This document shows positions 15,753 to 54,156 of a DNA stretch of 64,000 nucleotides, piece by piece; position 1 is the first letter of the stretch; each line of letters opens with the position of its first letter. The stretch lies in sequence record ON287370.1; one strand, 5' to 3'. A model generated the notes under the pieces. That model was not told the DNA's origin. It ran no database searches and saw only the letters and a list, made by a program, of their open reading frames with translations. The position numbers and the translations under genes are program-made.

Positions 15753-17924
15753 TTATGGTACATCGATAGCGATTTCTTTACCAGTGCCTTCAGTCTTGCC
15801 TTCAACAGCAATCTTACCACTGATTTCAGCCAGGTGTTTGTTCACTTTAGTGATCAGACCTTCGTCGCCCAGCAGAGACTGGATGTCTTCGATGGTTACG
15901 CGGCCAACAACTGGGCACAGCGGGTGGTGCTGGTAAGCAGGCTGAGTGATGATCATGCGGTATTGACGATCAGCCTGGTTTACAGAGCCTTCGATAACCA
16001 GCAGTTCTTTAGCTACACAAACACCCATACCACCGAAGATGTCAACAGAACCTTCTTTAGTCATGGAGGTTGGAACGATCCACATACGACCTACTTCAGA
16101 GCTGATGTTAGTTTCAACGATGTTGAACTTAACATTTTCACCGAAGGTACGGTAGTCACCGGTGGTCATCAGGAACGGAGCCAGCGCAGCGTGAGCTACG
16201 ATGGTGTAAGACTCAGGACGGTTGTCCAGTTCTTTCAGAGCAGAGATGTTCGAGTTAACACGCAGAGCAGTGATCACGTCGTAGATCTTGTTGACGAGGG
16301 TTGCTTCGATGTTGTCACGAGTATCTTTGCTATCCAGGGTAGATACTTCTTTAACCAGGTTCAGAGTTGCTTCGATACCAGTGGTACCCAGGAAGTGCTG
16401 ACCAGGCAGTACGGAAGAGGAATCGTCGTTGATGTTAACGATCTTCATACCGTTGTTGTCGTAGACGTAGTTAAAGTGGATATTAGCCGCTTTAAATGCA
16501 TCGTGAGACATGTTACGGGTAACCATTACGTCCATCTGCTGTACCAGCATTGCCAGTACGTCAGCGTTGTTATCTTCGTTCAGCATTGGATACTTAACAG
16601 AGATAGGTTGACGACGGTTGATGTTGTAAGATTTAACGGTGTTAGCGTAAACAACAGTAGTACCATAACGGCTACGGTTGGTGTTCGCGTGGTTCAGTTT
16701 CAGCAGGATACCGTGGATAGAAGCTTCCAGTGCCTGAGCAGTGATCAGAGCAGTGATGTCTTCTGGCATGCCTGGAGTACCTGGGACCAGTTTGTCGCCG
16801 TCTTTGTTAATCACGTAAGCGATAGCAACAGGAGAAACGGTTGGAGACCAGCTACGGGTAGAACGGCTGTAAGTAGCGCTCAGCTCGAAGCTCAGGAATA
16901 CTTTCAGACCAGCGTCAGTCAGAGACTTGAACAGTTCGGTAGCTTTACCGTCTTTGTCTTTCAGGTTGGTTACATTGATGCCGTTCAGAACGAAGTTGAT
17001 CTGACGTTTTTCATCGGAAGTAACACCAGTAGAAGGACGAGCAGCAACGCCAGCCATGTTTTCGGTGTCCAGAGTTACAAAGCCTTCACCATCTTTGGTT
17101 TTAACTTTGAACAGCAGGGACTGCAGACGGATCGAAGAAGCTTCGATTTCATCGTTCTGCTCGAATGGTGCAGCACCAGGTGCACGGCACAGGCTCAGCA
17201 GGTTGTTGATTTTGCGAACGGCCAGGTAGTTGGTTTTATGAGTTTCACGGCCCAGCAGGTCGTTAGCGTCATAAGTAGCATCCCATGGAGCCCAATCAGC
17301 AGAAGGAACGAACATAGCGGTGTTCGCATCAGCTGGGTTAGCAGGCAGTACAGGAACCAGTTTCAGGTCGTCACCAGCGTTGAAGGTGGAGTCAGCCAGA
17401 ACGGAAGCGATAGGACGCAGATCTTCCCAAGCTTCGTTAGCGTTACCAGAGCTGTTATATGCACCAACACCAGCGATGTCGATTGGCAGAACCAGAGCTT
17501 CTTGATCGTAAGGAACAACCAGAGTCGGGAACAGAGCTTCAGCAGCAGCCCACTGACGGTTAGAACGGGCGTTCAGGTCGATGGTGGCAGCTTTCTGACG
17601 AGCAACAGCACCTTGATCCAACTGCATGGAGAAGGATTCCATACCGCCGTGTTTGATCATGTCCTGCAGCTGTTGTGCACGCTGGTTGAAGTTCTGAGTA
17701 CCGTTGATTGCAGAGCTAACTGCATTCTTCTGGTTGTAACCCATGGACTTTTCAAAGTTACGCAGGGTAGAACTCATGGATTCTTTACCAACGATGCTTT
17801 CCAGACCCAGGTTAGCGCCAGTGTGCGCAGAAGGGTTGGTGGAGAAACCGTTGATCAAGGCTTTAAGATCAGCACCAGATTTAGAGGTGATGAAATGGAA
17901 GTTCTTAGAAATTTCTTGAGACAT
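15753..17924 (-). CDS. Major capsid protein (phiKZ gp120-like)
   Basis: 723 aa; GMESF cleavage-type site, AAAEALFPT.VV, I...PAY.H...CPV motif; strong codon bias; synteny with DnaB and RNAP. Confidence 0.9.
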   Translation of the reverse strand: MSQEISKNFHFITSKSGADLKALINGFSTNPSAHTGANLGLESIVGKESMSSTLRNFEKSMGYNQKNAVSSAINGTQNFNQRAQQLQDMIKHGGMESFSMQLDQGAVARQKAATIDLNARSNRQWAAAEALFPTLVVPYDQEALVLPIDIAGVGAYNSSGNANEAWEDLRPIASVLADSTFNAGDDLKLVPVLPANPADANTAMFVPSADWAPWDATYDANDLLGRETHKTNYLAVRKINNLLSLCRAPGAAPFEQNDEIEASSIRLQSLLFKVKTKDGEGFVTLDTENMAGVAARPSTGVTSDEKRQINFVLNGINVTNLKDKDGKATELFKSLTDAGLKVFLSFELSATYSRSTRSWSPTVSPVAIAYVINKDGDKLVPGTPGMPEDITALITAQALEASIHGILLKLNHANTNRSRYGTTVVYANTVKSYNINRRQPISVKYPMLNEDNNADVLAMLVQQMDVMVTRNMSHDAFKAANIHFNYVYDNNGMKIVNINDDSSSVLPGQHFLGTTGIEATLNLVKEVSTLDSKDTRDNIEATLVNKIYDVITALRVNSNISALKELDNRPESYTIVAHAALAPFLMTTGDYRTFGENVKFNIVETNISSEVGRMWIVPTSMTKEGSVDIFGGMGVCVAKELLVIEGSVNQADRQYRMIITQPAYQHHPLCPVVGRVTIEDIQSLLGDEGLITKVNKHLAEISGKIAVEGKTEGTGKEIAIDVP

Positions 17925-39267: not shown

Positions 39268-39921
39268 TTAGAACACTAAGAAGCTTTCCAGATATTCCAG
39301 ATAGGAACACAGAGAACGAATAACATTCAAGTTGTCAAGTTCCATACCAGCATAAGTGGTATCGGACCATTCAACGATACGTTTCTCATTCTTAATGCCA
39401 TCGGTCAGTTCTTCCAGCGTTGTAGTGAGATAGTTGGTCCATTTGTATGGTTCAACATTAGCCCACTGTTCTGCCGTAATAGGAGTCTGCAGAGAGTAAC
39501 TAGTTGCTGTAATCAAACGAGCTACTGCACGCCGCAGATAAACCTGACGTTCTGGTCTGTCTTCAAGGGTGGTTTCTTGAATACGTTTAGACATATCCAG
39601 GATATAGTCGGCAACTTTAGTCATGATCATCAGACGAGCGTCGATCAGAGCTTTGTTGTACCCTTTGGTTATAGGATGACTGAGAATGAAGTCAGCAGCC
39701 TTCAGAGAGTTACCAGTTGTCTTGGAAGACAGTAACTGGATGGCTAGTTGATTCTTGCCAGCGATCTCTGGTAAGTTAAAGACATCTTCAATAAAGGAGA
39801 TGATCCCTTTCTTACAACGAGGTTGAGAAACAAAGTCACTAACATAGTCGGTGAACTTATTATATTTCTCTTGATCGAGATACAGTTGGTCAAGAAGCGC
39901 AATGATTTCTTCTTTCTGCAT
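39268..39921 (-). CDS. Hypothetical protein
   Basis: ATG 39921 with AAGGT RBS; predicted helical. Confidence 0.6.
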   Translation of the reverse strand: MQKEEIIALLDQLYLDQEKYNKFTDYVSDFVSQPRCKKGIISFIEDVFNLPEIAGKNQLAIQLLSSKTTGNSLKAADFILSHPITKGYNKALIDARLMIMTKVADYILDMSKRIQETTLEDRPERQVYLRRAVARLITATSYSLQTPITAEQWANVEPYKWTNYLTTTLEELTDGIKNEKRIVEWSDTTYAGMELDNLNVIRSLCSYLEYLESFLVF

Positions 39922-39922
39922 T

Positions 39923-41503
39923 TTAAATACCTTTAGCAATGCCGATCTTTTTCAGTTCTTCATTGATGCTGTTGATGATCCCGATGTTCTTCTTACGGAA
40001 GTTCATAACTTGACCACGCCATGCTTCAAGGATACCGGACAGTTTAGGATGCTTGTTAATAAACAATGCATCATAATCCACATCCAGAGTAGAACGTTTA
40101 CGTTCACCACCATTTTCAGCACGAACTTCATCAATAGCTTCTGGAGGGAGAACCAAAGCTTCAGTATCCAAAATGTTCTTAACATCGCGACTGATATAAG
40201 CAAGCATCAGTTTATCAACTTTGTTAGCCCAGTTAACGATACCGGCAATAGAACGACGAACCTGAGAAACGATGGTAATCAGATATTCCAACTGACTGAT
40301 GTAACGAGTGATCAAACCAGAGTAAGCTGAGTAGCTTGCGGTAAGAACACCAGAACCTGGAGCAAATGCTTCAACAGCTTGTACCAACTCTGCATCTTTC
40401 ACTTCGATCAGCGATTTAAGATTAGCCAGTTGATTTGCATCGTAGCGTTTCTTAGAAGAGTTCAGCAGGATTTTACCAAGCTTGCTAGCTACGTTACGGT
40501 AGTCTTGATAAAACTCTTCATTCAGGCGTACTTTGGTAGTTGCTTCAATGGCAGCACGGTTTTGTTCCATGACGGCTTTGAAGTTGGTTTCAATACCAAT
40601 GTCACCCAGATCCAGACCCCAGACTTTCTTAACGATATCGGATACCATATCAGCCAGTGGTTTGGCATCAAGTTCTTCCAGAATCTCACGGTCAAGTGCA
40701 TGGCGATATTCAAGAATATCTGCTTCACTGAAAGTATCTTTGTTCTTGAAAGCTTGTTCCAGTTTACGAGTAGCCTGCTGATAACGACTTGCAGAACCAC
40801 GAGCACGCTGGCCAGCAGACAAGATAACTTCTTCAGCACGTTCCAGATCTTTATTTACATTAGTCAAAGCTTCTGCTTGTTGTAAAGTAGTTCTGTTTTT
40901 GTGTTGAATGATAGTGAATGCATCTTGAGCGGATAAGTTACCTGGGAGGGCAGCAAAGAGTTCTGGTGCATCAAGCTTGACACCATCTTCATTAGCCATC
41001 ATAGCCAGAAGTTTAGCCAACTTAACTTTAACAGAATCAGAGTACTCAGCAACAATGGCCAGTTCCTTCTCGGTCTTCTCGAAACCAAGCAAAGTACGAA
41101 CACGCAGAACGATCCAATCTACTACTGCAATGCAGAAACGTTTAACTGCTTTGATGATAGTGATGAAACCTTTCTTCAGAGTTTCCAGGAATGATTCAGC
41201 ACCTTTAACAGCATTGATGCGATCGTAACCAGGAACCAAACCTTCCACACCATCAATACGCAGAGCGCTGAATGCACTTTTACTCAGACGTTTGCTTTTG
41301 ATATATGCACGGCAGTTATCTACAACCTGTTGGAAGGACTCCTGACCAGTTGTACTATAAACGTCGTCCAGTGAGATGTATTCTTCCCCATCCTTACCAC
41401 GAGTAATGGTATCTACTTTATTAGTAGGTGTATGAGGAGCAAGCTGGAGTACAGACCCCAGCTCTACAGAATCATCATCTTTAACTTGTTTAACTTCAGA
41501 CAT
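39923..41503 (-). CDS. Internal head protein (phiKZ gp86-like)
   Basis: GQES, GVEG and GAES sites, then FLETLKKGFITIIKAVKRF amphipathic helix; synteny. Confidence 0.65.
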   Translation of the reverse strand: MSEVKQVKDDDSVELGSVLQLAPHTPTNKVDTITRGKDGEEYISLDDVYSTTGQESFQQVVDNCRAYIKSKRLSKSAFSALRIDGVEGLVPGYDRINAVKGAESFLETLKKGFITIIKAVKRFCIAVVDWIVLRVRTLLGFEKTEKELAIVAEYSDSVKVKLAKLLAMMANEDGVKLDAPELFAALPGNLSAQDAFTIIQHKNRTTLQQAEALTNVNKDLERAEEVILSAGQRARGSASRYQQATRKLEQAFKNKDTFSEADILEYRHALDREILEELDAKPLADMVSDIVKKVWGLDLGDIGIETNFKAVMEQNRAAIEATTKVRLNEEFYQDYRNVASKLGKILLNSSKKRYDANQLANLKSLIEVKDAELVQAVEAFAPGSGVLTASYSAYSGLITRYISQLEYLITIVSQVRRSIAGIVNWANKVDKLMLAYISRDVKNILDTEALVLPPEAIDEVRAENGGERKRSTLDVDYDALFINKHPKLSGILEAWRGQVMNFRKKNIGIINSINEELKKIGIAKGI

Positions 41504-41517
41504 GATGATTCCTTATA

Positions 41518-41952
41518 TTAAACGATCTGATCGGTTTCCATGAACTGAGGAAGCTTATAGTTAGCTTCATCAACTAACTGCTGGACCAGAGACTTATAAG
41601 TTTCCAGTTCAGTGTATTCCAAATCAGCTGGGTTCTCTACATAAGGAACGATCTGAATCTTTAGCACACAATCAGTGAAAGTGTGTTGCAGGAAGTTATC
41701 CAGATTGCGGAAGAAGTCACCGATGGTCTTCATAACGATCAGACCGTTAACAGGTGTGGTTTCATTCCAGTAACTCAGCACATAACGGTTAAACTCGATG
41801 CACTGTTCTTCATCCAGTTTATTGGAAGTGTTAACAGTAATCAGAGCTTTAACATAGGCAGTACGAGCGATAGCGATTTGAGTCTCAGGGTTAGTTACAC
41901 CCTCAGCGATCAGGTTCTGTTTCAGTTTTACAATGTGAGCTAAGTGACTCAT
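41518..41952 (-). CDS. Small head protein (phiKZ gp85 position)
   Basis: 144-aa ORF between gp84-like and gp86-like genes. Confidence 0.55.
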   Translation of the reverse strand: MSHLAHIVKLKQNLIAEGVTNPETQIAIARTAYVKALITVNTSNKLDEEQCIEFNRYVLSYWNETTPVNGLIVMKTIGDFFRNLDNFLQHTFTDCVLKIQIVPYVENPADLEYTELETYKSLVQQLVDEANYKLPQFMETDQIV

Positions 41953-41961
41953 GATAAATCC

Positions 41962-43305
41962 TTAAAAGGCATCTTTATAGATAGACAGAGAATGGGCAAC
42001 CAGTTCATCTGTATAGTGTTCAAACTCAGCGGCTTTGAAATCACTGCCAGAGAAGATCCAACCCAACAGACGTTGAACCGCAGTACCTTCAAAGAAAGGT
42101 TTGGATTCAGAGATCATTTCTTCCAACTCTTTAGCATCTTTCAGCATTTGAGCTTTGGTGCGGTTATCAATATATTTGGCACCATTCAGAGCGATGATCT
42201 GATCGCGTAGCAGGTTCTTCACTCGACGATAAGGGGAGTCGTAAAGTTCATTAGGGTTAACCATTGCGTGGGCATGGAGTAAACCTGACAGTACACCGAT
42301 AACTGCTGACAATACAGCGAATACTGGCATTACAGCAATAGCAGAAGCAATAGCAACGCTGGTCATAGAGATACTGAAACGTTTCAGGATATCACCATAG
42401 TCCAGAGCCAACAGAGCACCTACCAGTGCTTTAGGGACGCCGCAACGTACTGCGAACAGATCGGCATAGATTTCAGCACCACGGTCAGTTGCACCCAATG
42501 ACAGAGTACGACGAATATCGCGAGTGTTGATGGCTTTATCAAACATCACGATGATTTCCTGACCACCCATTTTATCCAGTTCTTCTACAGTTGGACGAGT
42601 AGTACATTCCAACTCGCTCAAAGTCTGGTGGATAATGGCGGAACGCTCTTTACCGTATTTGCGACCATCAATGACCATGCGAGCAGCAATAGCTGGCATA
42701 ATAGTGTCAATGACATTACGAGTTACAAACAGGAAGGAAGTAAAGATATGGCCTACTTCATGAAGCAGGAAGGCAGCGACACCTTCTGACATGGTGAGGT
42801 TATACCGACTCAGGATATTTGACTTCAAGAATGAATCGATATATTTGCTAGTATAAAGGGTAAAGGTAACTTTACTGTAATCGCCACCAACTTTACCTTT
42901 GGCTGTATCAACCCAACCCCTCAGTACATCAGTACGGAGACGACGGAATGCACGACCGATATTACTATCGGAAGGATTCATTACACCGTCAAGACCTTTA
43001 TTGTTGAATACGTGGTTAGGACTAAACCAACCAGAATCAACAGCCATGTTGTCAACGGTTTCAGATGGTGCACGAACATCGGTCTTAATACCAAAGGTAT
43101 TAAAGATAAGTTCTTCAATAGCGATGAGTGTATCACGTCCACCAGTAAAGGCAACGCGGTTACCATTTTCGGTAACTTCATCAACCAGGGTTTTATTGAA
43201 GATGCTAACCAAATCGAGGTAGCACTTCTGGTCCTGGTAATCCATAAATTCCACACCAGCTACGGTGATCGGCCGTGGCGGTTGAAGGAAATCGATTCCT
43301 AACAT
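41962..43305 (-). CDS. Virion protein (phiKZ gp84-like) with zincin HExxH motif and hydrophobic segment
   Basis: FLLHEVGH, EIYAD.FA.R.G and YDSP.RR motifs; AGVE site near the N-terminus; ATG 43305 with GGAG RBS. Confidence 0.7.
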   Translation of the reverse strand: MLGIDFLQPPRPITVAGVEFMDYQDQKCYLDLVSIFNKTLVDEVTENGNRVAFTGGRDTLIAIEELIFNTFGIKTDVRAPSETVDNMAVDSGWFSPNHVFNNKGLDGVMNPSDSNIGRAFRRLRTDVLRGWVDTAKGKVGGDYSKVTFTLYTSKYIDSFLKSNILSRYNLTMSEGVAAFLLHEVGHIFTSFLFVTRNVIDTIMPAIAARMVIDGRKYGKERSAIIHQTLSELECTTRPTVEELDKMGGQEIIVMFDKAINTRDIRRTLSLGATDRGAEIYADLFAVRCGVPKALVGALLALDYGDILKRFSISMTSVAIASAIAVMPVFAVLSAVIGVLSGLLHAHAMVNPNELYDSPYRRVKNLLRDQIIALNGAKYIDNRTKAQMLKDAKELEEMISESKPFFEGTAVQRLLGWIFSGSDFKAAEFEHYTDELVAHSLSIYKDAF

Positions 43306-43393
43306 ATGAGTAAAACTCCGGAGTAATTTAAAAGGGCAAGCTGAATAGTTTAGAAAATTCAACTTAAGACGTCATAACATTCGGGTATTTATA

Positions 43394-51840: not shown

Positions 51841-52905
51841 TTACTTACCAAATAGTGTAACTCTTTGTTCTTCAGTTATTCCTCTAGGTAATGTCTCTGC
51901 CTTTCTTAAATCAACATACTCCCAAACACATCCGCTTCTAACTATTGATGGATCTTTGGTGGCCCTGCTCACATGGGCTTGCTGGAAACCATACTTAGTT
52001 AGTTCTTTACCACCGTAGCATACGAACTTATCACCTTGGTGTTTTCCAGGAATTACTATAGTCCCCATAACTGGTTTGGTCGTGGATAGTAAAGTTACAC
52101 CATCATTAACCATTCTATCAAGTAATTGAGGTGGTATTGTGTTTGTATACGTGGCAGCTTCTTCCCTGGTTATATATGACCATGAACATCCATATGTAGT
52201 TTTAGCTTTACCTGACACTGTCTGTTGAATGGATGCTGGATCTAAACCAAGATTCTTTATAGCGGTTCTACCATAAATAACAAACTGTGTTCCCTTCCAC
52301 ATGCTATCTACTACGACTGTTCCAAGTACTGGTTTAGTATTTGGATCATCAATTCCAGACTTAACTAATCCAGTATCTATTGCATGTTGTCTATTTTCAG
52401 ATTGGGTACTCCATTCTAGATTACCGAAATGAGGGCATAATTTATTACCATCTTTATGGTTAACCTGAAGTTTAGAGTAAGGTATATCTTTATGCGATTC
52501 CTTTTTACTTATAAAGGTAGAAGCAACAGCACGATGAATGTAGATATTTTTAAATGCTTCCTTTTCATCGTCATATATATGCGTCATCAGGTAATTAGCA
52601 GAATGAGTTCCGGTAGTGACGTGAACTTCATTTTCTTCTGGCATCCGCCAGGCTATCTCACCTCTAGATGAAACCATGATATATGGTTGATAGAGTTCCC
52701 CTTCTTTTAGATCACTATCTCTAGTCGTTCTATAGTAATTTAAATAATCCCAGCAGTAATAGCGAGGGTTTTTCAATAGTTGTTCTTTGATATGTTCTTC
52801 TCTGGCTCTTACTTTTTCTTCTTCACTTAAATCATCTACTCCCAATACAGATTGAATTGGAGTGAACATATCGAAATTTGTATCTTTATAAATCAGTATG
52901 GTCAT
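51841..52905 (-). CDS. Free-standing HNH homing endonuclease with two C-terminal DNA-binding-type repeats
   Basis: YIHRAVA.TF...QVNHKDGNK...NLEWST.SEN..HA HNH_3 signature; two KPV.GT.V...Y.C.W.Y repeats (NUMOD1-like). Confidence 0.85.
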   Translation of the reverse strand: MTILIYKDTNFDMFTPIQSVLGVDDLSEEEKVRAREEHIKEQLLKNPRYYCWDYLNYYRTTRDSDLKEGELYQPYIMVSSRGEIAWRMPEENEVHVTTGTHSANYLMTHIYDDEKEAFKNIYIHRAVASTFISKKESHKDIPYSKLQVNHKDGNKLCPHFGNLEWSTQSENRQHAIDTGLVKSGIDDPNTKPVLGTVVVDSMWKGTQFVIYGRTAIKNLGLDPASIQQTVSGKAKTTYGCSWSYITREEAATYTNTIPPQLLDRMVNDGVTLLSTTKPVMGTIVIPGKHQGDKFVCYGGKELTKYGFQQAHVSRATKDPSIVRSGCVWEYVDLRKAETLPRGITEEQRVTLFGK

Positions 52906-53022
52906 TATGCTTCCTATTTGTTAATATTTCATTATTAGTCATTTTATCTAACACATAGTATTAAAATACTCTTCGTAGTAAAAAGATATGCATAGCCTTC
53001 ATACTAACTTAATATGTGTAAG

Positions 53023-53049
53023 CGCATATTAATAATATAGGTCTGAAAC
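53023..53049 (-). promoter_or_regulatory. Putative early promoter upstream of the HNH gene
   Basis: GTTTCAGACCTATATTATTAATATGCG on the minus strand. Confidence 0.55.
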
Positions 53050-53072
53050 AAAATAAAAGAAAGCATATAAAT

Positions 53073-53100
53073 CCTACTCACCCAATTAAGGGTGAGTAGG
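53073..53100 (-). terminator. Terminator hairpin
   Basis: CCTACTCACCC-AATTAA-GGGTGAGTAGG, perfect 11-bp stem. Confidence 0.85.
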
Positions 53101-53106
53101 TATGTG

Positions 53107-53556
53107 TTATTTACCGATTGCTAGTAGCAGAGTGTTGTGCAGGTTATCAGTTTTAACTGGGTAAATTACTTTACCAACGCTATAGTAATGAACGTGAATT
53201 TCAACAACCGATTTAGTTTGAGCAGTATCTGCAGAGATCATCAAATAAGCTCGTCGGACACCAGCTCGTTCAGGATTCAGTTCAATAGCTACTGCATCCA
53301 GACCTTCTACGATCTCTGAAATGAATGGAGTGTCTTCACATTCAACAATCTGATTGATTGCTGCATAAACCAGATTAACATCGGCTACTTTGCTTACCAG
53401 GTAATGATCAAACAAGTTACCTACATCTGAATGATGACACAGGTTCTTGAAATCATGAATGAATTGTTTCTTAACATCTTTCATGATGTCCAGTTTCAAC
53501 AGATCACGGAAGGATTGCTCTGCACGGTTGATAGCTACTTTATTGAATTTGTTCAT
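53107..53556 (-). CDS. Hypothetical protein, paralog A
   Basis: 149 aa; AAGGA RBS; clearly related to 53701..54156. Confidence 0.7.
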   Translation of the reverse strand: MNKFNKVAINRAEQSFRDLLKLDIMKDVKKQFIHDFKNLCHHSDVGNLFDHYLVSKVADVNLVYAAINQIVECEDTPFISEIVEGLDAVAIELNPERAGVRRAYLMISADTAQTKSVVEIHVHYYSVGKVIYPVKTDNLHNTLLLAIGK

Positions 53557-53700
53557 TTCTATATTTCCTTGTTTAATTAGTTTACTTAAAAGAGAATAAC
53601 CTAAGAGGATGTCACTATCGTTCCACTTATGTTTATATAACTTTCCTTCGGAATTAACCCCCTACCCCCAATATATAAGAAATAGAGTATAATAAAAATA

Positions 53701-54156
53701 TTAACCTAAAGCAATAATTAAAGCTTCTTTAAGTTTATTGTTAGGTACTTTATAGACTGACTTAATCCCAGTCTTGAAATGAACATGGATTTCGATATCG
53801 AACTTATCCTGTTCTTTATCAGCAGACATTGCCAGGAAAGCTTTATCAGCATTTAAACGGTCTGTCTTCAGTTCAATGACAATCCCGTCCATAAGAGTAA
53901 AGACTTCATCTTCCTCGTCCCAGGACATGGAGATCTTACAAATAGGATCGCAACCAACGATATCTTTAACCAGTCTTACTTTGCCGTCTGGTTTAATAAA
54001 CTGGTTAGCGAACAAGTTACCCAGGGACGAGTGGTAACACATGTTCTTGAAGTTGTGGATAAAGTCTTGTTTAAGATCTTTAAAGAACGGTTGAGTAACC
54101 AGTTGGCGGAAAGATAGTTCGGCTTCGTTATGTACTGGTTTGTTAAATTTGAACAT
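53701..54156 (-). CDS. Hypothetical protein, paralog B
   Basis: 151 aa; shares KFNK...AE.SFR.L...KD.K..FIH.FKN.C.HS..GNLF with paralog A. Confidence 0.7.
   Translation of the reverse strand: MFKFNKPVHNEAELSFRQLVTQPFFKDLKQDFIHNFKNMCYHSSLGNLFANQFIKPDGKVRLVKDIVGCDPICKISMSWDEEDEVFTLMDGIVIELKTDRLNADKAFLAMSADKEQDKFDIEIHVHFKTGIKSVYKVPNNKLKEALIIALG

Follow-up and report, generated by a model that had tools for sequence, protein, structure and literature searches.

What does a conserved head protein of the nucleus-forming jumbo phages do, and does it do so within the capsid or at a membrane of the infected cell? The question is raised by a gene of Serratia phage vB_SmaM-Sureiya (genus Petsuvirus, 256 kb; ON287370.1), of which we analysed a stretch of 64,000 nt, hereafter called the window. 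The gene lies on the minus strand at 41962-43305 and encodes a protein of 447 residues (P0001) that is 100% identical to SUREIYA_02440, whose GenBank product is 'putative virion structural protein'. A first-pass annotation, made by a model from the DNA letters without database searches, had suggested that it may be a packaged, membrane-anchored metallopeptidase with M48-like motifs. Overall, sequence, predicted fold and the proteomics of an ortholog give good support to its identity as a capsid-carried zinc metallopeptidase, and we consider it likely that it is a packaged, M48-like metallopeptidase. The parts of the gene and its product on which the analysis relies are as follows.

41962-43305, minus strand: coding sequence of 447 amino acids, ATG at 43305, stop codon at 41964-41962 (PHROG, tblastn and synteny)
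43249-43305, minus strand: residues 1-19, predicted propeptide, probably capsid-targeting, ending in A-G-V-E19 (S/A/G-x-E type; conservation and alignment to ASE-20 of SPN3US gp45, from which cleavage in Sureiya is presumed)
42406-43245, minus strand: residues 21-300, predicted alpha/beta N-terminal part and zincin catalytic core (domain model and structure searches)
42748-42762, minus strand: H182-E-V-G-H186, predicted to supply two zinc ligands and, with its Glu, the general base (invariant in 59 sequences; hhalign to the M48 helix)
42460-42474, minus strand: E278-I-Y-A-D282, predicted third zinc ligand in an M48-type E-x-x-A-D motif (E278 and D282 invariant, A281 in at least 90%; sequence evidence)
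42259-42393, minus strand: residues 305-349, hydrophobic helical hairpin, candidate membrane anchor (Kyte-Doolittle and AlphaFold)
42223-42243, minus strand: Y355-D-S-P-Y-R-R361, spaced as M48 H-P-x4-R with Tyr replacing His (Y, D and R361 in at least 90% of 59 sequences)
41965-42222, minus strand: residues 362-447, predicted C-terminal helical bundle (generic helical-bundle matches only)

Conservation of the motif set

Two alignments were used to judge the motifs: a first one of 25 homologs, down to 31% identity, and a wide one of 59 sequences, including 19 distant IMG/VR relatives, down to 16% identity. Among the 25 homologs, H182, E183, G185, H186, E278, A281, D282, Y355, Y359, R360 and R361 were invariant. 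The wide alignment retained eight invariant columns only (G141, H182, E183, G185, H186, E278, D282 and G289), six of which fall within HEVGH and EIYAD; the Glu at position P1 of the N-terminal cleavage site, A281, Y355, D356 and R361 were each kept in at least 90% of the sequences. Because the motif residues are close to being the only invariant columns in 59 sequences that diverge to 16% identity, we regard the set as more than a chance occurrence. HE.GH, E..AD and YD....R are all present in phiKZ gp84, PhiPA3 gp086 and SPN3US gp45, and in all family members 94-98 residues separate HExxH from the Glu (96 in the Sureiya protein). In the C-terminal bundle, K402, E406, G407, T408 and R412 are conserved among closer relatives only.

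The first-pass annotation had placed HEVGH correctly (42748-42762, residues 182-186), and YDSPYRR, which it also picked out, was located at residues 355-361. EIYAD was likewise found where it had been reported (42460-42474, residues 278-282), but it begins 96 residues after H182 rather than about 90. The proposed intact M48-like zinc-protease motif set was upheld: H, E, H and the distal E are invariant across the gp84 orthologs in the 59-sequence alignment, and Pfam, hhalign, Foldseek and VIA-align results agree with it.

The predicted fold and its nearest relatives

When the 59-sequence alignment was used to model residues 21-300 by themselves, the predicted local distance difference test score (pLDDT) was 87.1 and the predicted template modelling score 0.83; in this model the core is laid out as an active-site helix (172-213) and a glutamate helix (277-287). 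As the first-pass annotation had suggested, we searched this model with Foldseek, and the top 8 matches in the PDB were all ZMPSTE24/Ste24 (E 0.019, probability up to 0.94, about 20% identity). VIA-align, which is independent of Foldseek and was run against 48,161 chains, placed ZMPSTE24 (Z 7.2) and Ste24p (Z 6.8) at ranks 1-2, followed at ranks 3-4 by proabylysin (Z 6.1, root-mean-square deviation (rmsd) 3.3 Å over 92 residues) and BepA (Z 6.1, 2.7 Å over 98); lower ranks held selecase, projannalysin, the Geobacter M48 protein 3c37, SPRTN and DPP III. The Z scores are modest, and what counts is that the same family takes the top places in both searches, which do not depend on each other. Among viral models in BFVD, the matches ranged from orthologs to the 'zincin protease' of Bacillus phage AR9 and metagenomic phage proteins named 'Peptidase M48 domain'. 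The full-length AlphaFold model was mediocre (pLDDT 71); with it, Foldseek returned nothing, and VIA-align mostly picked up unspecific resemblances to the hairpin and to the helical bundle at the C-terminus. As modelled, the catalytic core is a zincin fold closest to the M48 and minigluzincin peptidases.

Sequence profiles were compared as well. Of the 25 close relatives, nine gave a weak match to the Pfam family PF01435 (Peptidase_M48), the best at E 2.2e-4. A match to this family, likewise weak, headed the list for SPN3US gp45 (E 0.0034, 17.7 bits, covering profile positions 60-165 of 186), and PF01435 was also found in eight of ten distant relatives (E 6e-4 to 0.03, best 20.2 bits), in seven of these eight as the top-listed match, and several of the matches in relatives cover both HExxH and E..AD. 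In neighbour clusters of the ESM Atlas, PF01435 was present in 14-15% of members, and the E. coli M48 paralogs show the same E..AD motif. We built an M48 profile of 84 sequences (80 bacterial loci plus E. coli LoiP, YcaL, BepA and HtpX), to which hhalign aligned the 59-sequence family over the active-site helix with a probability of 95.1 and an E value of 3.1e-8; this profile superseded an earlier one of four sequences, which had reached a probability of 77% only. A second, collinear piece paired residues 273-304 with the M48 E..AD helix and the G-x-P/K-x-L turn that follows it (E 0.061). Under relaxed settings, the hhalign path crossed the hairpin and paired Y-D-x4-R with M48 H-P-x4-R at identical spacing, with low confidence. 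A profile search of PDB sequences produced noise only (an integrin I-domain, E 0.1), and a scan of the phage record with PF01435 gave no match.

The best structural matches of the Sureiya protein are found among M48 peptidases (HtpX, BepA, LoiP, YcaL, Ste24/ZMPSTE24, Oma1) and minigluzincins (proabylysin, projannalysin, selecase), with which it shares, in the same order, an HExxH helix, a Glu within E-x-x-A-D followed by a G-x-P/K-x-L helix, and, towards the C-terminus, an aromatic residue or His in an x5-R arrangement. It differs from M48 enzymes in its H-to-E spacing of 96, in an extra alpha/beta N-terminal part of about 140 residues and a C-terminal bundle, and in being carried within a virus capsid behind a targeting peptide that is predicted to be cleavable. 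Zincins of the SprT/SPRTN type share the minimal core, with weak Pfam SprT-like matches in some relatives and a VIA-align match to SPRTN at Z 5.2. However, these matches were always weaker than those to M48, and the third ligand of the SprT type is a His, not a Glu in E..AD. Our reading of the sequence and the model is that the protein would work like an M48 or minigluzincin peptidase and is probably a distant relative of both.

Head packaging and N-terminal processing

Evidence for packaging comes from the Sureiya protein's ortholog in SPN3US. By mass spectrometry, SPN3US gp45 is a mid- to low-abundance head protein listed as 'Processed at ASE-20' (PMC5694885 Table 1), and this cleavage was seen in every mass-spectrometry experiment reported (PMC10052503 Table 2). 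In the Sureiya protein, the AGVE that the first-pass annotation noticed near the N-terminus corresponds to residues 16-19, with E19 aligned to ASE-20 of SPN3US gp45; G17, E19 and F20 are invariant in the 25 homologs, and distant relatives show a recurring (A/S/G/L)-x-E site followed by x-I/M-x-F/Y-Q. A search with the SPN3US prohead protease gp245 recovered a Sureiya homolog (E 7.6e-15), whereas a scan of the phage record with PF03420 (T4 gp21-type protease) had given no match. For the ortholog, mass spectrometry thus shows head packaging and loss of the first 20 residues to the prohead serine protease. Together with the aligned Glu and the protease homolog, this supports the earlier suggestion that the Sureiya protein would be packaged and trimmed in the same way.

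The same annotation had also suggested that the enzyme may be maturation-activated, a plausible view that the analysis did not support. Residues 1-20 are modelled as disordered (pLDDT 33-39), and the authors of the SPN3US work noted that gp45 is the only processed head protein with a propeptide of a length comparable to T4 capsid-targeting sequences. Because of this disorder and this length, the N-terminal peptide is more likely a targeting signal than an inhibitory prosegment, and we set the maturation-activated zymogen aside. The T4 internal proteins and Alt are similar in having a short N-terminal peptide that is cut by the prohead protease after a Glu and in being enzyme or effector cargo delivered with the DNA. 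Their cargo domains are unrelated to the Sureiya protein, for which targeting is suggested by the length and position of the peptide.

A conserved hydrophobic hairpin

Between E..AD and YD, all 60 family members contain a hydrophobic segment, with a peak of the 19-residue Kyte-Doolittle mean of 2.44 in the Sureiya protein and 1.64-2.62 across the family; in most members the peak falls within an uncharged run of 30-60 residues. The sequence of the segment is poorly conserved, and since the hydrophobic peak is nevertheless universal, it is the property that is conserved rather than a motif. AlphaFold modelled two helices in the stretch (305-323 and 327-349). The transmembrane segment of the first-pass annotation was therefore retained as a conserved membrane-type segment and revised in its form: about 45 residues are too long for a single helix, and the stretch is modelled as a hairpin. 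Located between the glutamate helix and the Y-D-x4-R helix, such a hairpin would leave the regions before and after it facing the same side of a membrane. The catalytic domain of E. coli HtpX is likewise interrupted by a hydrophobic hairpin, but between HExxH and E..AD, so that the hairpin stands before the glutamate helix there and after it in the Sureiya protein.

Family membership and prior knowledge

The Sureiya protein is homologous over its full length (residues 12-446) to PHROG 2767, a family listed with unknown function (E 1.1e-67), and tblastn found relatives in 169 phage records, all of them jumbo phages of Erwinia, Salmonella, Aeromonas, Vibrio, Pseudomonas, Klebsiella, Ralstonia and others. 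Record annotation and gene order identify phiKZ gp84, 201phi2-1 gp145, EL gp52, PhiPA3 gp086 and SPN3US gp45 as orthologs. With SPN3US gp45, phiKZ gp84, PhiPA3 gp086 and 201phi2-1 gp145 the protein shares 20-25% identity, and it has the motifs, the hairpin position, the N-terminal protease site and the gene order in common with the gp84/gp45 head-protein family. It stands apart as part of a subgroup from Serratia, Klebsiella, Erwinia and Aeromonas phages in which the C-terminal bundle is more conserved (EGT..QR and GSDFKA..FEHY motifs). Conservation of the family extends across the phiKZ-like jumbo phages (group 1, nucleus-forming). When the alignment served as query in a further word-based search for homologs, no new, more distant proteins came to light.

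The zincin nature of the family has already been published, and the Sureiya protein is a further ortholog. BLASTP linked it (E 2e-12) to SPN3US gp45, which is 100% identical to SEGD1 gp047 (AMR59696.1), and Iyer et al. 2021 described the AMR59696.1 family as a conserved uncharacterised zincin-like metallopeptidase of group 1 jumbo phages, for which they suggested a role in maturation (PMC7824862). Family members are labelled 'peptidase' in Erwinia phage AH04, 'membrane protein' in Kosakonia phage Kc263 and 'zincin protease' in AR9, and the head location of phiKZ gp84 itself is based on its GenBank note, 'structural head protein'. Our literature search turned up no paper in which the family is placed in M48, the hairpin is described, the zincin call is joined to the SPN3US proteomics or a function is tested, and the text of a transposon-sequencing preprint on phiKZ does not mention the phiKZ gp84 gene. 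To this, the present analysis adds the affinity to M48, a predicted third ligand, a hairpin found in all members, the link to the SPN3US proteomics and the likely targeting propeptide.

Bacillus phage AR9, a distant relative of phiKZ, apparently encodes two zincin paralogs (A0A172JI27 and A0A172JHV9), both annotated 'Zincin protease' in BFVD. The two copies suggest that the family is older than the Gram-negative nucleus-forming clade and able to duplicate.

Operon context

The gene is followed on the same strand by two genes that accompany it among relatives, and its start is preceded by a ribosome-binding site.

43316-43319, minus strand: GGAG ribosome-binding site, 10 nt upstream of the ATG (read directly from the sequence)
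41518-41952, minus strand: gene for a phiKZ gp85-like virion protein of 144 amino acids, same operon (PHROG 14520, E 1.3e-34; synteny)
39923-41503, minus strand: gene for a protein of 526 amino acids at the position of phiKZ gp86 / SPN3US gp47 (PHROG 14541, E 1.1e-98)

Gene order is kept among relatives, with the DNA polymerase gene divergent upstream and the gp85-like gene (about 145 amino acids) and the gp86/gp47-like gene downstream. The term 'head cluster' used in the first-pass annotation needed rewording: the unit is a conserved gp84-gp85-gp86 operon of head and ejection proteins, divergent from the DNA polymerase gene. In SPN3US, the ejection protein gp47 is essential, and once matured it starts with a predicted membrane helix (PMC5694885). 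The Sureiya 526-residue protein also matches PHROG 5750 ('internal head protein'), weakly.

In every relative examined, the gene for the 144-residue gp85-like protein (PHROG 14520, virion structural protein) separates the peptidase gene from the gp86-like one. Near residue 103 of the 526-residue protein is a K-G-A-E site, directly followed by a hydrophobic or amphipathic helix, an arrangement that mirrors the ALE-111 site and membrane helix of SPN3US gp47. Directly downstream of the gp86-like gene, an open reading frame of 217 amino acids (window positions about 39268-39921, minus strand) matched no PHROG family at E 0.001; an equally long gene occupies this position in Erwinia phage AH04.

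Proposed mechanism and alternative explanations

We propose that the 19-residue N-terminal peptide would direct the protein into the prohead and then be cut off after A-G-V-E19. The mature protein of 428 residues would bind zinc via H182, H186 and E278, with E183 serving as the general base in peptide-bond hydrolysis. On ejection it would exit the capsid alongside the DNA and the rest of the ejected proteins, and its hairpin would enter the host inner membrane or the early infection vesicle, where a substrate would be cleaved. Membrane action after ejection is favoured because the hairpin is universal, because M48 enzymes typically act at membrane surfaces, because SPN3US gp47, at the position of the downstream 526-residue gene, is an essential ejection protein with a membrane helix, and because all 14 cleavage sites mapped in SPN3US heads fit the A-x-E motif of the serine protease and leave no orphan site. 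Taken alone, this membrane step is tentative, and we place it somewhat short of probable. A packaged M48-like peptidase that is ejected and acts at a membrane is, on balance, the explanation that we find best overall, and we hold it with moderate confidence.

Several observations weigh against this identification. The Sureiya protein had no Pfam match even at E 10 and no NCBIfam match even at E 1, and none of the relatives matching PF01435 (14.5-20.2 bits) reached its gathering cut-off of 20.3 bits. The confident hhalign stretch is the 31-residue active-site helix only, which is common to many zincin families. The N-A-x-A strand motif that precedes the active-site helix in M48 is not conserved as such in the family, the aligned position reading I-D-S-F. 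The first-pass annotation had likened YDSPYRRV to the M48 (T)HP..R motif; the spacing is identical, but the His (and Pro) of H-P-x4-R are replaced by Tyr-Asp in the family. In three respects, then, the family lies outside M48 in the strict sense, namely matches below the Pfam threshold, no N-A-x-A and Tyr-Asp in place of His-Pro. Among the structural results, VIA-align Z scores of 6-7 are in a range called common by the tool's own notes, and the alignments to Ste24 structures have an rmsd of about 10 Å. In addition, scaling the published spectral counts per unit mass (about 2.9 for gp45, against 8.8 for the sheath with about 264 copies and 22.6 for the capsid with 1560 copies; PMC5694885 Table 1) gives SPN3US gp45 roughly 100 copies per virion, a crude and semi-quantitative figure, and many for a pure enzyme.

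An alternative explanation, proposed by Iyer et al. 2021, is that the protein is a second maturation peptidase which trims head or inner-body proteins inside the prohead or head, beside the serine prohead protease, and is dispensable after ejection. Packaging in the head and the extensive proteolysis during head maturation of these phages fit such a role (PMC7824862; PMC10052503), as does the fact that virions contain more copies of it than of the subunits of their RNA polymerase (PMC5694885 Table 1). However, each of the 14 mapped SPN3US head cleavage sites follows the A-x-E motif of the serine protease gp245, so that no site is left for another enzyme (PMC10052503), and the universally conserved hydrophobic hairpin would go unexplained; we consider this role unlikely. 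Another explanation is that the protein is mainly a structural or membrane-active head and ejection protein, such as part of a channel or a vesicle-forming agent, with the zincin fold as a scaffold or partner-binding site and catalysis dispensable. The copy number estimated above, the conserved hairpin and the operon shared with an ejection protein that has a membrane helix (PMC5694885) are in keeping with this, but pseudo-enzymes normally lose their catalytic residues, whereas here H, E, H, E and D make up five of the eight columns that are invariant at 16-20% identity, and we consider a mainly structural role distinctly unlikely.

A further alternative is that the protein does its work earlier, in the cell that produces the phage: anchored in the inner membrane, at which proheads assemble, it would act as a protease there before being packaged, and its occurrence in heads would be secondary. 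M48 enzymes such as HtpX act at the inner membrane. In SPN3US, proheads of protease mutants remain bound to this membrane (PMC10052503). Against this, the conserved cleavable peptide of the capsid-targeting type and the reproducible detection in purified heads speak for deliberate packaging (PMC5694885; PMC10052503), and we regard action before packaging as improbable. As for chance motif matches in a head protein that lacks a zincin fold, HExxH alone is a common pentapeptide, and the Sureiya protein itself has no Pfam match. Yet none of the 59 sequences departs from the motifs, and zincins of the M48 type were reached by four methods independently of one another; with this invariance and the Foldseek, VIA-align and hhalign results, a coincidence is extremely improbable and the explanation is effectively refuted.

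Other features of the window

Positions 15753-17924 form a GC-rich spot (0.478 versus about 0.41) with positive GC skew, which coincides with the minus-strand gene for the major head protein (PHROG 3231, E 1.4e-173). An open reading frame of 698 amino acids on the strand opposite this gene has no family match and is probably spurious. The lowest GC content of the window (0.353) was found at 52001-54000.

Implications for early infection by nucleus-forming phages

In nucleus-forming jumbo phages, the injected DNA is first enclosed in a membrane vesicle. Recent reviews list vesicle formation, the exchange of molecules and the hand-off of the genome as open questions for these phages (PMC12908238, PMC13282480). 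An ejected Sureiya-type protein might sit with its hairpin in the early vesicle, which is derived from the inner membrane, and act there as an M48-type membrane-surface protease that is required for an early step: to form or remodel the vesicle, to rid it of host membrane or defence proteins, or to free co-ejected proteins or the genome for the hand-off to the phage nucleus. As a joint claim this is rather doubtful, and the idea of an ejected membrane protease stays speculative. If the protein served head maturation or structure only, the gain would be a routine one of annotation, from 'virion structural protein' to 'M48-like zinc metallopeptidase, head protein'. As a conserved capsid-carried protein with a predicted protease active site and a membrane-type hairpin, encoded in an operon with an essential ejection protein, it is a concrete candidate for a part in the early vesicle steps.

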